A stretch of 64,000 nt of DNA, taken from the sequence record NC_041917.1, one strand, 5' to 3'. The translations under genes were made by a program, and so were the position numbers. Below, piece by piece: positions 12,977-32,492 of this stretch; positions within the stretch are counted from its first letter, which is position 1; each line of letters opens with the position of its first letter. Below the pieces are notes generated by a model. The model was not told where the DNA came from. It made no database searches and saw only the letters and a program-made list of their open reading frames with translations.

Positions 12977-15676
12977 ATGAGTAAACAAATAAAAGGAAGC
13001 GTACAAGTTGGTAGATACGCTTCATCACAAGGACGAAACTTAGTCCGATCTTTAAATGGGTTACCATTTGATGGTACTGGTAATTTAGAAATAAATGCAT
13101 ATACAAAAGATGAATTCGAAAAAATAATTAGCGTTTTACCACTATCACACTATGGTTCATTTAGCTTTTTACCTGCTGGTGTATATGGTTCTTTTGAAGG
13201 TGCGAGTGATGTTCCTAGTTATAGATACAGAAGAATACACGTAGAAAATGATGGTACATTAATTATTTTACGTCCAGGAACTAACGGAGCTAAGCGTGGT
13301 TTATATTATTCATATCTAGATAATATATTAACAACAACATCTCTGAATAACGCAATAAACTCAAATAAAGAATATAAACCTGGATATTTTGGTAGTTCTT
13401 ATACTGCTAAAATGGCATATGCTAGTGATTCTAGAGTTGTTGCTGGATTAGCACAAAATAATGCAGGTGAAAATTATACCTTTATATCATGGGCTAATAA
13501 TACATTAAATGATGCACAGCATGTGGGTTCAATTGTACCATCATCTATTATACAACCTAATTCTGGTTCTATGAGATTTGTAATGACGGGAAATACGGAA
13601 ATATTTTTCTTCGTAGAAGTTAGTACTGGTAATAATTTAATTATGGAAGTACGTTCAGTTCCTATTTCACAAATACAGGAATCAGCAACAACATTAACAG
13701 TTACTGAATATCCAAACTGGACAACAAATTCATTTTATGGAAATGTTTATACGAACCAAAATATTGTACTGAATAATAACAAAATGAGTTCAGTTGCATC
13801 AGACCAACCATATGTATTAATACCTGCTGGTGGTTCTGGTGAACCATATATGACAGGTGTTGATATATATGCTGCTCAAAATGCATCAGGAATGATACGA
13901 TTAAGAGTGGTTGGTGACTGTTATTGTACAACACAAACTGCAAATATTCGCCCAAAACATAGCTATAGTTTCTTATTAAATCCAGCAACAAGAGTTGCTA
14001 CATTAGAAGCGGGAAATACTGCACCATTAACTATTACTCAAACTGGTAATAATATGTCTGTTACTGGTAATACATATACTACTGACCCAATACTTACTGT
14101 TAATGGTGGTCGTGGTAACATAGTTATGTCATATTACTATTTTAATAATGGAACAACAATTGGTATTGGATCTCAAAATTTAGGTTCAGCACCTACTTAT
14201 ATCATGAGAGCTAATTATCCAAATGCTACTTCAATTTATGATACTTTACAAGTTCGTAATCATACTAGTACTAATTGGCTTTTAGGATCAATGAAAACTT
14301 CATATGGTTCACCAGTTGGTGCTGAAGTTATGGGATATGAATGGGTTACTGGAAATAGATATAAGGTAGCTTCGTGGGATGCAAATTCACAATACCGTTT
14401 ATCATTAAACCAAACAGCACCTACACCAACATTCACATTCGGTTCAGTTGGATTAGGTACAATTAAAGGATTCCAGCCAACTACAAATAGAAAATTCATT
14501 GATAATACCAATGATAACAAATTGTTTATATCGACAATTTCTGGAAGTACTGTTGCAACAAATGGTGGTGTTTTTGTAGAGTCAATTAAATTAAGTTCCC
14601 CATTATCATATGATCAAGATTTAAATACATCAGGTTCAATGAGTATAAGTAATATATTATTACAAACATTAAAAAATCAACAATTAGCGAATGCAACAAT
14701 TCCAGTAGATTTGAATAATAAGTCAACCATAACATTATATGTACCACAACAATCTGATATTCCAGCATTTGCATTGATTTCTGGAATAACCCCAACATTT
14801 TCTAATTATATGAAAATTATAGAAGTGAATGTTAATACTAGAACTGGAGTAATCAGTACTCTAACTTTTAAAAGACTTGTATATGAAGGTGGTAATACAA
14901 TTGGTGGCTTTAGTTCAGATGCTACATATGGCTTAGCTAATGGGGCTGTTGGATTAACAATTTATGATGCAGGTGCATTTTACTTTATTGGTGGAGTAGA
15001 TCCTTATATGTATAAAACATTAGGAGACACCAATAGTACTACATGGAGAGCCAAAGTTACTAAGAGCACACAACAAATGGACTCATTCGTTATCAGTGGT
15101 TCTTACCAACATCATACCCCAGGAAATGGTCAATTACCGTGGGCAGTTCCTGGCGTTGGTTTTGGATATATTGATTTTACACTAAATGCTGGTGATGATA
15201 GAGTACGTACTATATTCCAACCAGTAGGTACTACATTAGCTCAATACAATGCATGGACAGACACTGGTAGTCCTATTTTATTGGCTGGACAGGACGTTGC
15301 ACAGGGATTTGTAATATATTTTACAGAGAATACTCCAGTACTTTTATCAGGAAAATCATTCACTATGCCAATTCAAAATATTGATTTGACAACAGTTAAA
15401 GCTAATCCTGCTAATAGTACTTTTTATATCTACGTAACGATGAAAGAAGGTTTAGCACAATATTTGGCTACAGAAACAGTAATAGCAGAAACAGGAACTA
15501 CAGCATATAATACACTATGGATTGGTACAGTGACTACAAATGCAATTCAGATTGATACGATTAATATTTTAAAACGTAGTCGATTAGATGTATTTGGTGC
15601 ATCACTAGAAGCTGCTGGTTCTTCATTCCCTGTTAGCTATGGTCTACCATCAGCGACAGGTATTATCAATTGGTAA
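12977..15676 (+). CDS. Large putative virion fibre/structural protein, paralog 1
   Basis: 899 aa, T/S/N/G-rich; shares LPLSHYG, ENDGTL..LRPG.NG, QDVAQGF.IYFT and P..TG.I.W with the next two ORFs; late promoter upstream. Confidence 0.6.
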   Translation: MSKQIKGSVQVGRYASSQGRNLVRSLNGLPFDGTGNLEINAYTKDEFEKIISVLPLSHYGSFSFLPAGVYGSFEGASDVPSYRYRRIHVENDGTLIILRPGTNGAKRGLYYSYLDNILTTTSLNNAINSNKEYKPGYFGSSYTAKMAYASDSRVVAGLAQNNAGENYTFISWANNTLNDAQHVGSIVPSSIIQPNSGSMRFVMTGNTEIFFFVEVSTGNNLIMEVRSVPISQIQESATTLTVTEYPNWTTNSFYGNVYTNQNIVLNNNKMSSVASDQPYVLIPAGGSGEPYMTGVDIYAAQNASGMIRLRVVGDCYCTTQTANIRPKHSYSFLLNPATRVATLEAGNTAPLTITQTGNNMSVTGNTYTTDPILTVNGGRGNIVMSYYYFNNGTTIGIGSQNLGSAPTYIMRANYPNATSIYDTLQVRNHTSTNWLLGSMKTSYGSPVGAEVMGYEWVTGNRYKVASWDANSQYRLSLNQTAPTPTFTFGSVGLGTIKGFQPTTNRKFIDNTNDNKLFISTISGSTVATNGGVFVESIKLSSPLSYDQDLNTSGSMSISNILLQTLKNQQLANATIPVDLNNKSTITLYVPQQSDIPAFALISGITPTFSNYMKIIEVNVNTRTGVISTLTFKRLVYEGGNTIGGFSSDATYGLANGAVGLTIYDAGAFYFIGGVDPYMYKTLGDTNSTTWRAKVTKSTQQMDSFVISGSYQHHTPGNGQLPWAVPGVGFGYIDFTLNAGDDRVRTIFQPVGTTLAQYNAWTDTGSPILLAGQDVAQGFVIYFTENTPVLLSGKSFTMPIQNIDLTTVKANPANSTFYIYVTMKEGLAQYLATETVIAETGTTAYNTLWIGTVTTNAIQIDTINILKRSRLDVFGASLEAAGSSFPVSYGLPSATGIINW

Positions 15677-30219: not shown

Positions 30220-30247
30220 TTGACATTATTGAAAAATTTGCTAAAAT
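30220..30247 (+). promoter_or_regulatory. Sigma70-type promoter
   Basis: TTGACA-N16-TAAAAT. Confidence 0.55.
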
Positions 30248-30292
30248 AAAGGAAATCGTGAGGTTTCCTTTTTTCGTTTGTGGAGTTAGATC

Positions 30293-30682
30293 ATGTTGAA
30301 AGATTTAGAATTTTCTGGTTTAGAAGTTATTAGTGCTACAAAAAACATCAATGACTACGATACAGAAAAAGATTTTATTATTGCTATTACTATGGTACGC
30401 AATGAAGATTCTTATTCACATTTGACTGGAATTGAAAAATTAATACATGAAACTAACCTACAAAATGATAACAAATATATTAAGTTAAGTTGTACATATC
30501 GTACAAATGATAAGGGACAAATAGTTCTTCCTATCAAAATTGCATACAATGGTAGTACTGAGAAGTACTCTAAACGTGCATACTATGATCGTGATTTAAC
30601 CCCCGATTTGTTTGAAGATATTGCATTTATTGATGATTTCTTTGAACGCACACCAACTGAAATTAAACGTTTATATATGTGA
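30293..30682 (+). CDS. Hypothetical protein
   Basis: GGAG RBS, 129 aa. Confidence 0.7.
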   Translation: MLKDLEFSGLEVISATKNINDYDTEKDFIIAITMVRNEDSYSHLTGIEKLIHETNLQNDNKYIKLSCTYRTNDKGQIVLPIKIAYNGSTEKYSKRAYYDRDLTPDLFEDIAFIDDFFERTPTEIKRLYM

Positions 30683-30689
30683 GGAAATA

Positions 30690-30947
30690 ATGAACGATGT
30701 ATATTATCGTATTATCCGTTCATACGAGGATGATGAACTACTTCGAGTAGTAACTATGCAAGATTTTGATGAATATGATTATGACCATAGTCGTTTTCTA
30801 TGTGCTAAAGGAACAAATGAACGTTTACAATTTAGTACTGAAGAAAAAGCTATCAAATTCTTAAATGATAATATCAATCTAGAAAATATTGATCCAGAGT
30901 TTAGGGTAAAGACTCAGAATTATAATGACAAATTCTATAAAGATTGA
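30690..30947 (+). CDS. Hypothetical protein
   Basis: GAGG RBS before ATG 30690. Confidence 0.7.
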   Translation: MNDVYYRIIRSYEDDELLRVVTMQDFDEYDYDHSRFLCAKGTNERLQFSTEEKAIKFLNDNINLENIDPEFRVKTQNYNDKFYKD

Positions 30948-30952
30948 AATAA

Positions 30953-30982
30953 GTGAAACACATTAAAAAAATGTGGTATAAT
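30953..30982 (+). promoter_or_regulatory. Promoter of the TGAAAC...TGGTATAAT class, driving the large ncRNA candidate
   Basis: GTGAAAC-N17-TATAAT with extended -10 TGTGG. Confidence 0.75.
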
Positions 30983-30984
30983 AT

Positions 30985-31452
30985 GTATGAAGACCTGAAA
31001 AGGTACTTCATACAACTCTGATTGATCCGTTTTACGGAATAGTTTAAGCCTGACCTCGTTGAAAATGTAAACAGCAGATGAGTAGTTCAATCAGTACGAG
31101 TGCAAAAGAAACCCGTTAGGAGATGGCATAGTTTGTACCACCCACGGCAATGCGGCACTATAAATACGTCCTTGATATGAACGTACTAGATAGACATATG
31201 AGATGCATACTCACCTATTAAAAGGGAGATATTCTACGGAATATCAATAGTATTTGTTGCTGAATTAGCGAGTACTATATGCGAAGGAATGAGAAATCTT
31301 CGACCGTTGTATGCGACTGTAGTAACTGGAAACCGGACAACCCGCCAGTGTAGCTACAAATATTAGACAATATAGATCCGTCTAAAATTTGAGTTAATCT
31401 ACAAATTCAGAGGTAAGACTACCACCGTCAGATATTATTCTGACTTTTTTTT
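30985..31452 (+). ncRNA. Candidate ~465-nt highly structured non-coding RNA (unassigned)
   Basis: No ORF of 60 aa or more on either strand; promoter at the 5' end, terminator GTCAGA-N6-TCTGAC-T8 at the 3' end; many hairpins including GAAA, GAGA and cUACGg loops. Confidence 0.7.
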
Positions 31453-31604
31453 CGTTCCCCTGTTGCGGGGGGATGCAAATGGATCAACAAACCCCGTCAG
31501 TATAATAGTATTGAACGTACTTAAATACATTGATGATGAATGGAAATTATTCGAGTTCGTCAGAACGAGAAGAATTGAACATTCTTGACTAACGGAGTTA
31601 GGCA

Positions 31605-31979
31605 ATGACCCTTTCAGAAAACAAGTACTTCGAACAGATTATGACAAAGTACTTTTTAATATTAATTGAGCAAGACCTGTATCAATACAGGGGAAATACA
31701 TTATTCATAGATAAATCATCTCAGGATGATAGAACTCTTGGCATTTATAATGCTATGTGTGATATGGCATATATTGGTGAAAATATTGTATGTGTTAATT
31801 TTGATAAAGCATTTCCAATTAAACACTTGGATAAATTGCACTTTTTTATTGGAAATAATGCATATTACTTAAATCCAGTGCCATGTGATTTTTTGTTTAT
31901 TTTTGACGCAGTAAAAAATCGTGAGGAATTAAATAAAATCATTAATTTTTACAATCCTAAATTTATTTTTTACTGCTAG
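31605..31979 (+). CDS. Hypothetical protein
   Basis: GGAG RBS, 124 aa. Confidence 0.65.
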   Translation: MTLSENKYFEQIMTKYFLILIEQDLYQYRGNTLFIDKSSQDDRTLGIYNAMCDMAYIGENIVCVNFDKAFPIKHLDKLHFFIGNNAYYLNPVPCDFLFIFDAVKNREELNKIINFYNPKFIFYC

Positions 31980-32464: not shown

Positions 32465-32492
32465 AAGGACACATTTTGTGTCCTTTCTTTTT
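32465..32492 (+). terminator. Intrinsic terminator; near-identical copy at 33030-33054
   Basis: AAGGACAC-loop-GTGTCCTT at both sites. Confidence 0.75.

Follow-up and report, generated by a model that had tools for sequence, protein, structure and literature searches.

The locus considered here is a 657-bp gap (30948-31604) in a 64-kb stretch of phage DNA, the whole of which is referred to as the window. No other ORF-free gap in the window is as large, as had been claimed in an initial annotation of this DNA; the runners-up measure 214-335 bp. The gap is flanked by BF_0162 and BF_0163, neither of which has an assigned function, and its sequence is 100% identical to that of Serratia phage BF (KY630187, Eneladusvirus, 357,154 bp; window positions equal KY630187 positions minus 62,000). 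The gap carries no annotation in KY630187 or in almost every relative, and tiny ORFs are annotated there in some relatives, inconsistently. No ORF of at least 60 amino acids is found in the gap on either strand. Coding readings were rejected; in the alignments, a short GGGGGGAUG-led frame shifts among relatives and its peptide is unconserved. Both strands fold better than shuffled sequences (MFE z = -4.9 for the plus strand and -4.6 for the minus strand), and energy alone therefore cannot decide which strand is functional.

A phage-specific promoter lies at the start of the gap (30953-30982, plus strand, as are all RNA features described below). It consists of TGAAAC (30954-59), a 17-nt spacer and the extended -10 element TGgTATAAT (30974-82); the extended -10 had already been noticed just upstream of the RNA, and that observation stands. 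The predicted transcription start is at about 30987-30989. The promoter motif has four matches in the window against 0.25 expected, every one of them on the plus strand, and TGAAAC-N17-T(G)nTATAAT heads every paralogue of the RNA as well as a copy in a Serratia chromosome. This motif has been reported as a “divergent RpoD-like” promoter of phages CBB and GAP32, near DNA-synthesis genes (PMC5259590). On the minus strand of the gap, promoter-like matches are no commoner than in shuffled sequence (15 found versus 13.7 expected), and an antisense regulator comparable to the RNA I of ColE1 was not identified. It had also been suggested that an internal TATAAATA at 31159 could serve as a late promoter for a shorter isoform. 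This sequence lies in the conserved junction UAUAAA, relatives read CTTTAAATG or CAATAAAGG instead, and comparative support for the shorter isoform was not found.

The same gap, approximately 650-740 bp long and unannotated, is present at the syntenic site in several relatives, with identity ranging from 99% down to 71%. These relatives are the pEa_SNUABM phages, fHe-Yen9-03/04, GAP32, CBB, Kaldavass, XbC2 and EJP2, together with 7t3/Munch/fENko-Kae01, Hallingskeid and XaC1. For 14 orthologues, RNAalifold predicted 108 pairs, 33 of them with compensatory double changes, and a curated structure comprises 116 pairs in 22 helices, a pseudoknot included. In the curated structure 93.5% of cells are paired versus 85.9±0.4 in shuffled controls (none of 500 shuffles reaches the observed value), changes on both sides affect 45 of the 116 pairs versus 24.8±2.2 when shuffled, and sliding the partners by 1-3 columns drops pairing to 37-44%. 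The wider comparison of 45 family members gives 98% canonical pairing over 54 core pairs, with double changes in 31 of these; slid partners reach 30-51% and shuffles 79±0.5%. Mutual information in the 45-member alignment mostly recovers Watson-Crick pairs. Compensatory changes among homologues, by which the initial annotation had proposed to judge the RNA, are thus found both in the orthologues and in the wider family. Since G-U pairs make up 10% of paired cells in the 45 members (247/2414) and pairing falls to 87% when the alignment is read as minus-strand RNA, the functional molecule is the plus-strand RNA. Conservation of at least 93% is seen at 147 of 547 positions, many of them in junctions and loops, and the invariant blocks are chiefly of this kind (ACCCGU, CGGCAAU, GAUAGA, AAGGGAG, CGACCGUUG, GAAAC, CAACCCGC and GGGGGAUG). 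Judged by these comparisons, what the gap encodes is a large, pseudoknotted non-coding RNA of the plus strand, and its functional form is the folded RNA rather than a protein or duplex DNA.

The RNA begins with a 5'-terminal hairpin, GUAUGAAGACCU-GAAA-AGGUaCUUCAUAC (30985-31013), whose sequence is class-specific. Compensatory versions (GGGGAAG/UUUUCCUC and GGUGAAG/CUUCACC) occur in orthologues, 52-60% of its cells are paired in a region where the alignment is poor, and paralogue class P1 has a different, GC-rich 5' hairpin. Domain 1 (31018-31094) is a three-way junction with helices that are 97-100% paired. Its covarying helix P1 joins CUGAUUGA (31018-25) with UCAAUCAG (31087-94), helix P1a (31026-29 with 31035-38) has compensatory changes in every pair, and helix P1b (31050-60 with 31070-77) closes the loop GAAAAUGUA; a near-invariant junction, AGAUGAGUAG, occupies 31076-86. 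Domain 2 (31095-31158) is built on GUGC/GCAC (31100-03/31155-58) and CCGU/ACGG (31113-16/31144-47), both canonical in 45/45 sequences, with 31100/31158 being GC or CG and 31101/31157 being UA or AU. The internal loop of Domain 2 contains the invariant ACCCGU (31111-16) and CGGCAAU (31145-51), and its apical hairpin is variable. The segment that follows (31159-31200) comprises the junction UAUAAA, which contains TATAAATA, a hairpin (31165-69/31181-85) with up to four pair types per position that is canonical in 42-45 of 45 sequences, and the invariant GAUAGA (31189-94).

Domain 3 (31205-31314) contains hairpins at 31228-45, 31247-78 and 31281-31304 as well as the invariant segments AAGGGAG (31222-28) and CGACCGUUG (31301-09); a closing helix, GCAUAC/GUAUGC, is found only in the class of the window copy. 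The loop of the second hairpin, UGAAUU (31261-31266), forms a pseudoknot with AAUUCA (31404-31409) downstream of Domain 4. This pseudoknot is canonical in all ungapped sequences (43-45 per position) and exists in four versions (GAAUU/AAUUC, UCAUGU/ACAUGA, UCGAAU/AUUCGA and UUGUAU/AUACAA), and it had been overlooked both by the earlier reader and by RNAalifold. Domain 4 (31318-31403), canonical in 45/45 sequences with two to three pair types, is closed by UGUAG/CUACA (31318-22/31399-31403). Within it, the invariant GAAAC..CAACCCGC is enclosed by ACUGG/CCAGU (31325-29 with 31345-49), and the 11-nt loop AAUAUAGAUCC tops a peripheral hairpin (31363-68 with 31380-85). The position of this 11-nt-loop hairpin varies between paralogue classes. 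Most of the helices that had been proposed from the single sequence are borne out by covariation, namely the 5' hairpin, TCCGT/ACGGA, GATATTC/GAATATC, TAGTAT..TTGCT/AGCGA..GTACTA, CGAAG/CTTCG, ACTGG/CCAGT and TTAGAC/GTCTAA. Others needed revision: the family-wide partner of TGTAG (31318-22) is CTACA (31399-31403) and not GCTACA (31353-58), and AATTTG/CAAATT competes with the much better supported pseudoknot 31261-66/31404-09. The helix GGTA/TACC holds in the paralogue class of the window copy but fails family-wide (12-29 of 45).

The 3' region is organised around a direct repeat of approximately 28 nt. The first copy (DR1, 31405-31431) ends in an invariant CGUCAG, and the second (DR2, ..AUGGAUCAACAAACCCCGUCAG, 31474-31500) is followed by a TAtAAt-like box. 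The two copies co-vary by identity: positions 31413 and 31482 carry the same base in 43/44 sequences, whether G, C, U or A, and positions 31422 and 31492 agree in 45/45. Mutual information, 5-mer complementarity and RNAduplex gave no consistent Watson-Crick partner shared by DR1 and DR2 through which RNA-RNA pairing could account for their identity covariation. In the class of the window copy, GGAUCAA (31481-87) is complementary to UUGAUCC (31022-28) over 7 bp, a match that is class-specific and uncertain. Between the repeats is inserted a terminator-like hairpin with U8 (31427-31452; GTCAGA-N6-TCTGAC-T8; 6 bp, 3 GC), which is found in the class of the window copy and, with other sequence, in class P3, and is missing from classes P1 and P4. 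It is probably leaky. The terminator had been described as the 3' end of the gene; the motif is indeed present, but it does not mark the boundary, as conserved sequence and structure run past it.

Downstream of the terminator, a C4-loop-G6 hairpin (31457-31475) is followed by AUG and contains GGGGGAUG (31468-75), invariant in 45/45 sequences. Its 5' arm varies by C-to-U changes only, so that G-U pairs are kept on the plus strand only. A conserved AT-rich tail (31501-31604) then carries the motif GAACGAGAAG (31563-72, GAACGWAGUGA-like), UUCUUGAC and a hairpin, CUAAC-GGA-GUUAG (31589-31601), followed by GGCA and the AUG of BF_0163 at 31605. The tail hairpin occurs in seven fully complementary variants across copies, and in the class of the window copy it stops four bases short of the BF_0163 AUG. 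Copies of classes P3 and P4, whose downstream genes are unrelated, have this tail as well. The previously proposed 3' limit of 31452 is thus too short, with conservation and covariation reaching 31500 and the hairpin at 31589-31601. From the promoter to the second CGUCAG the RNA would measure approximately 515 nt, or approximately 620 nt with the conserved tail included. As delimited by the alignments, the conserved unit is the entire gap, extending beyond 30985-31452.

The description of this gene as “stand-alone” also proved incomplete. A profile HMM of the orthologues detects full-length relatives elsewhere in the same genomes, amounting to at least four paralogues per genome. Phage BF has copies at record positions 30240-30939, 92948-93604 (the window copy), 258701-259439 and 335297-335940, all on the plus strand, in unannotated gaps and co-oriented with their neighbours. 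Yen9-04, GAP32 and CBB carry copies at the same four positions as BF, five copies are present in one metagenomic genome, and the paralogue positions are syntenic across at least three genera. The BF paralogues are mutually only 61-69% identical, and when 45 non-redundant members are clustered each class spans several genomes, which together indicate that the duplications are old and that each copy has been kept. Genes flanking different paralogue classes show no homology across classes, and the idea of a linked protein was rejected on this ground. In IMG/VR, two independent motif scans gave 33 and 51 matches, all on contigs of this jumbo-phage clade, and in a metagenome motif scan 32 of 36 matches were real, all of them falling into the same classes. 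As far as these searches reach, the distribution in phages is confined to Rak2-like enterobacterial jumbo phages (Eneladusvirus, Mimasvirus, Asteriusvirus and relatives). Sharanji and 121Q-type phages are examples of coliphages positive for the family, and RaK2, K64-1 and PA5oct count as Rak2-like phages negative for the RNA.

One match was found among 185,579 bacterial and archaeal genomes, a full-length copy in the chromosome of Serratia fonticola GTA-SR07 (nhmmer E = 7e-88). Its promoter is of the type seen in the phages, its fold is preserved, and it possesses its own compensated pseudoknot, UUAUGUAG/CUACAUAA. The 1.3-kb non-coding stretch that holds it has no ORF of at least 70 amino acids, the longest being 61 amino acids (25-amino-acid cut-off), and no same-strand gene lies within approximately 200 nt downstream. 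Adjoining the copy, at a site next to rof and tilS, are genes for a large serine recombinase and for two proteins of the ParB_N/RepB kind, and the same island is also present on an independent 152-kb metagenome contig. Serratia is the genus infected by phage BF. The recombinase/ParB/ParB triad is widespread, with 549 relatives, and in other Enterobacterales its cargo slot contains a SMODS nucleotidyltransferase module or a type III restriction-modification system. The triad is a generic island backbone with defence cargo elsewhere, and the adjacency of ParB/RepB genes to the RNA is therefore not specific.

Comparison with known RNAs gave negative results throughout. Rfam 15 yielded no match at gathering score in the whole window. 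On 30850-31650, a threshold of E up to 10 gave nothing but noise that lay outside the core, and for three BF paralogue loci and the Serratia copy there was no match inside the RNA at E up to 1. The families without a match include GOLLD, ROOL, OLE, group I/II introns, tmRNA and RNase P, against which a search had been recommended, and also raiA, 6S, Y RNA/YrlA and self-cleaving ribozymes. ARAGORN found no tRNA or tmRNA in the window. The reported lack of tRNA, tmRNA and RNase P hallmarks is thereby confirmed with covariance models and, for tRNA and tmRNA, with ARAGORN. Neither a description of the RNA nor a transcriptome for these phages was found in the searchable literature. The large non-coding RNAs ncRNA001 and ncRNA002 of the related jumbo phage PA5oct, which are proven by RNA-seq, have no homology to the BF RNA with nhmmer filters off. 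With no Rfam family and no literature description, the view of the locus as an undescribed large phage RNA holds, and by these searches the RNA is a new family and a member of no known one. Several specific candidates were also considered and rejected. A group I/II intron does not fit because the RNA starts at its own promoter and because the ORFs on either side are complete, are annotated as distinct genes in every relative and are unrelated between classes. A hammerhead-like arrangement of CUGAUUGA, AGAUGAG and GAAA was dismissed since these segments form the covarying helix P1 and give no covariance-model match. A CsrA sponge was rejected because the GGA motifs are mainly in stems and junctions and not in repeated hairpin loops, and a mini-CRISPR (repeat-spacer-repeat) because the supposed spacer is the most conserved part.

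As to function, we tentatively and only narrowly prefer a cis-acting RNA of the replication-origin or primer type, as one possibility among several, to a trans-acting RNP or ornate RNA. Transcription would start at about 30988, and the weak terminator at 31427-52 would release a species of approximately 465 nt; read-through would append the C4/G6 hairpin, the second copy of the repeat (28 nt) and the tail, as far as the gene that follows. Each copy would work in cis, like a T4-style promoter-driven origin transcript or a ColE1 RNA II-like pre-primer. The fold would position the 3' repeat and the G-run, the RNA would stay hybridised to, or re-pair with, the template DNA just downstream, and the hybridised RNA would prime leading-strand synthesis. 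The Serratia island copy would be an origin mimic, either decoy or hitch-hiker, fired by the phage's own promoter. Such a model has precedents: T4 oriF and oriG fire from middle-mode promoters via R-loops, and ColE1 RNA II (approximately 555 nt) requires an RNA-DNA contact between a G-run and a C-run. RNA-based prophage origins located beside par genes have been described in cluster A mycobacteriophages (PMC7157519).

Scaffold, decoy and ribozyme roles, suggested initially, are conjectural; the four diverged copies kept in synteny, and conservation as far as the next gene, speak at least as strongly for a role in cis. A role tied to each locus is suggested by the retention of four diverged copies at fixed sites, by the missing terminator in two of four classes combined with conservation up to the next gene, and by the same-strand identity of the repeats together with G6/C4. 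That this role may be of the origin type is favoured by the four to five dispersed, co-oriented, ancient paralogues at the same positions in BF, Yen9-04, GAP32 and CBB, by flanking genes that are unrelated between classes, and by a promoter class reported near DNA-synthesis genes (PMC5259590). The par-linked RNA origins of mycobacteriophages (PMC7157519), set beside the two ParB/RepB genes next to the Serratia copy, point the same way. The model also fits the repeats, since pairing of the upstream RNA with downstream template DNA would yield same-strand identity. The BF RNA resembles ColE1 RNA II, T4 oriF/oriG and the cluster A mycobacteriophage origins in having a dedicated promoter and a non-coding transcript of approximately 0.5 kb, and its number of dispersed copies would suit a genome with several origins. 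Further likenesses are a G-run/C-run together with same-strand repeats close to the 3' end, and one family member adjoining ParB/RepB genes. However, it has no sequence or structural homology to these origin RNAs, and its fold is far more conserved and intricate. The origin model is weakened by the invariant junctions, the pseudoknot and the swapped peripheral hairpin, which are RNP- or ribozyme-like; we know of no primer RNA that needs so elaborate a fold. It is weakened further by the repeats, which share only about 6 + 7 contiguous identical bases and would give a feeble RNA-DNA hybrid, by the unspecific nature of the ParB/RepB adjacency, and by the 5' hairpin and terminator in the class of the window copy, which fit a discrete stable RNA equally well. 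GC skew shows no inflection at the locus within the window, a measure that is a poor origin marker in T4-like phages.

The main competing account, of comparably tentative standing, is one in which a stable RNA acts in trans during mid-infection as an ornate structural, catalytic or RNP-forming molecule, similar in kind to GOLLD and ROOL. Its release would depend on the 5' hairpin together with the terminator, or else on processing at CGUCAG. Dosage or variant subunits would come from the paralogues, and the Serratia copy, driven by the phage's own promoter, would serve as a dominant-negative decoy. This account draws chiefly on the elaborate conservation, which recalls that of ribozymes. The multi-domain pseudoknotted fold speaks for it, as does the location of many of the 147 highly conserved positions in junctions and loops and the movement of the 11-nt-loop peripheral hairpin between classes, as is seen in large ribozymes. 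A 5' hairpin and terminator in the class of the window copy, with a terminator at the same position in class P3, would suit a released RNA, and the island copy keeps the fold and its own pseudoknot variant in a slot that holds defence genes elsewhere. A trans-acting RNA does not readily account for four diverged copies that stay at syntenic sites and are not homogenised, for two classes without the terminator, or for conserved sequence that passes the terminator and reaches the next start codon, and no partner protein is consistently encoded alongside. GOLLD and ROOL are large ornate RNAs of phages and prophages without known function. Like them, the BF RNA is several hundred nt long, multi-domain, pseudoknotted, phage-encoded and non-coding, and was likewise discovered through conservation and covariation and not through function. 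It differs from them in that covariance models show no similarity, each genome has four to five paralogues at syntenic sites, the promoter is dedicated and phage-specific, the 28-nt direct repeats co-vary by identity, and the conserved tail continues into the next gene.

A cis-acting 5' leader of the downstream operon, which would mediate processive antitermination or other co-transcriptional control as do HK022 put and EAR, is considered unlikely. Mid-phase transcripts would pass the internal and later terminators, and the leader would be processed off the mRNA. The element is always located between a promoter and co-oriented genes, transcripts can include the conserved 3' elements only by getting past the internal terminator, the tail hairpin (31589-31601) abuts or overlaps the BF_0163 ribosome-binding site (AUG 31605), and a bidirectional terminator follows two genes on (32465-85). 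This placement directly 3' of a promoter and 5' of co-oriented genes, with a terminator to be passed, is shared with put and EAR. However, known antitermination RNAs measure 70-120 nt, and the BF RNA is five to seven times larger. Its core of approximately 440 nt in four domains lacks the short two-hairpin fold of put or the approximately 120-nt fold of EAR, and it has no Rfam resemblance to either. Furthermore, the genes downstream of the copies are unrelated and differ by class, the class P4 tail resembles a separate sigma-70-type promoter (TTGACT-17-TAnnnT), and the Serratia copy has no same-strand gene for approximately 200 nt downstream.

A divergent member of a known family (group I/II intron, RNase P, tmRNA, TROVE-partner Y RNA, GOLLD or ROOL) is very improbable. 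The size and ornateness of the RNA would fit, and a putative TROVE-like protein was earlier reported elsewhere in the window. Against this stand the searches described above, which gave nothing relevant for the window, the locus, the three paralogues or the island copy, and the start at a promoter outside any gene, hence no intron. For Y RNAs, the existence of several paralogues (as in human Y RNAs) and the putative TROVE-like gene are points of likeness. However, no Y RNA/YrlA model matches the BF RNA, which exceeds Y RNAs three- to fivefold in length; the putative TROVE gene does not adjoin it, and all four BF copies are beside unrelated genes. A terminal Ro60-binding stem, formed in Y RNAs by pairing of the two ends, has no family-wide support; the only predicted upstream pairing of DR2 (31096-98 with 31495-97) consists of three invariant bp without covariation, and its upstream segment lies approximately 110 nt from the 5' end. 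A duplex-DNA element without an RNA fold, such as protein-bound iterons or a packaging or recombination site, would agree with direct repeats in concerted evolution and a multicopy, dispersed element, but it is highly unlikely because it cannot explain hundreds of compensatory changes, a pseudoknot strand in a loop and strand-specific G-U pairs (247/2414). The duplex-DNA, coding and known-family readings are essentially excluded.

To our knowledge, few large and highly structured RNAs lack an assigned role, and all those found so far have opened new biology. The family described here has an unusually strong comparative signal, including a pseudoknot in four co-varying versions. Its promoter is defined, and its phage-host pairs can be cultured, in some cases with E. 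coli K-12 as the host. We know of no other large phage RNA with four to five ancient syntenic paralogues or with a phage-promoter-driven copy in a host island. It may be, though we put this forward with considerable reserve, that Rak2-like jumbo phages possess a new large RNA machine, either an origin system or a ribozyme/RNP, which has been captured by bacteria and turned against the phage. In the origin variant it would be an RNA-primed, structure-dependent replication system acting at four to five sites per genome, and it would explain how replication starts in 350-kb T4-related genomes. If the RNA is instead an RNP or ribozyme, it would be a novel one. In Serratia, the recombinase/ParB defence-island shuttle would carry as its sole cargo a diverged, fold-preserving copy under a phage promoter, which would represent an infection-triggered decoy defence made of RNA only or a minimal satellite. 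Should the island copy protect the cell, it would constitute an RNA-only anti-phage decoy.

The RNA gene is headed by the first of four copies of the motif TGAAAC-N17-T(G)GTATAAT on the + strand of the window (30954-82, 39101-29, 60804-32 and 63709-37); none of the other three heads an RNA gene. The expected number of copies is 0.25. The motif represents a phage-specific promoter class, which is probably of the middle type. Short 'hypothetical protein' ORFs have been annotated within the RNA gene, on either strand, in several deposited genomes (e.g. related loci L002:1844-1948 and 2030-2146; L005:1837-2162; L009:1459-2061; L011:1464-1860). These ORFs disagree from relative to relative and are probably annotation artefacts.

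Two 28-nt direct repeats (window 31405-31431 and 31474-31500) evolve in concert: the base at 31413 equals that at 31482 in 43 of 44 members of the family, and the bases at 31422 and 31492 are identical in all members compared (45/45). A common pairing partner of the two repeats was looked for and none was found, and ordinary RNA secondary structure does not explain their concerted signature. A UUCUUGAC motif followed by a hairpin and GGCA recurs 3' of three paralogue classes (window 31582-31604; L169:3396-3424; L170:3356-3386), and the hairpin exists in seven covarying stem variants. Since the TTGAC of this tail resembles a -35 box and class P4 carries a TAnnnT box 17 nt further on, the hairpin may lie inside a sigma-70-type promoter spacer or at the next gene's ribosome-binding site. 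Window 32465-32485, two genes further downstream than the RNA, holds an intrinsic terminator that is perfect and bidirectional: AAGGACACA-nnn-TGTGTCCTT, with a T-run on each strand.

The copy at about 32 kb in phage CBB (L076:7971-8600) has the flanking genes of class P1, and its sequence clusters with the 335-kb class (cf. L145, the CBB copy at about 336 kb), a pattern that points to paralogues having undergone exchange or gene conversion. In XaC1 an HNH homing-endonuclease gene directly precedes the RNA gene (L012:527-1162), and in 7t3 and fENko-Kae01 such a gene is located two genes upstream of it (L009:1-591 and L010:1-591); the association is possibly coincidental. PA5oct, a related jumbo phage, has two large ncRNAs proven by RNA-seq, ncRNA001 and ncRNA002 (L134:764-999 and 14452-14902), and these show no sequence homology to the present RNA family. 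Large ncRNAs in these phages may have more than one origin.

A full-length, fold-preserving copy of the RNA, behind the phage-type promoter, is the sole 'cargo' of a small integrated island in Serratia fonticola GTA-SR07 (NZ_CP183218 4240001-4245500; L142:1-5500) and at a second locus (L171:3551-8528). The island's protein-coding part consists of a gene for a large serine recombinase and a pair of genes for ParB_N/RepB proteins. The island is adjoined by rof and tilS, and rof is duplicated in one of the two genomes (L142 / L171) and single in the other. In other Enterobacterales, the recombinase/ParB/ParB triad has defence-type cargo immediately after the second ParB gene, either a SMODS nucleotidyltransferase module or a type III restriction-modification system (L207-L209, L210-L213). 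The triad thus has the appearance of a general-purpose vehicle by which defence islands are moved.
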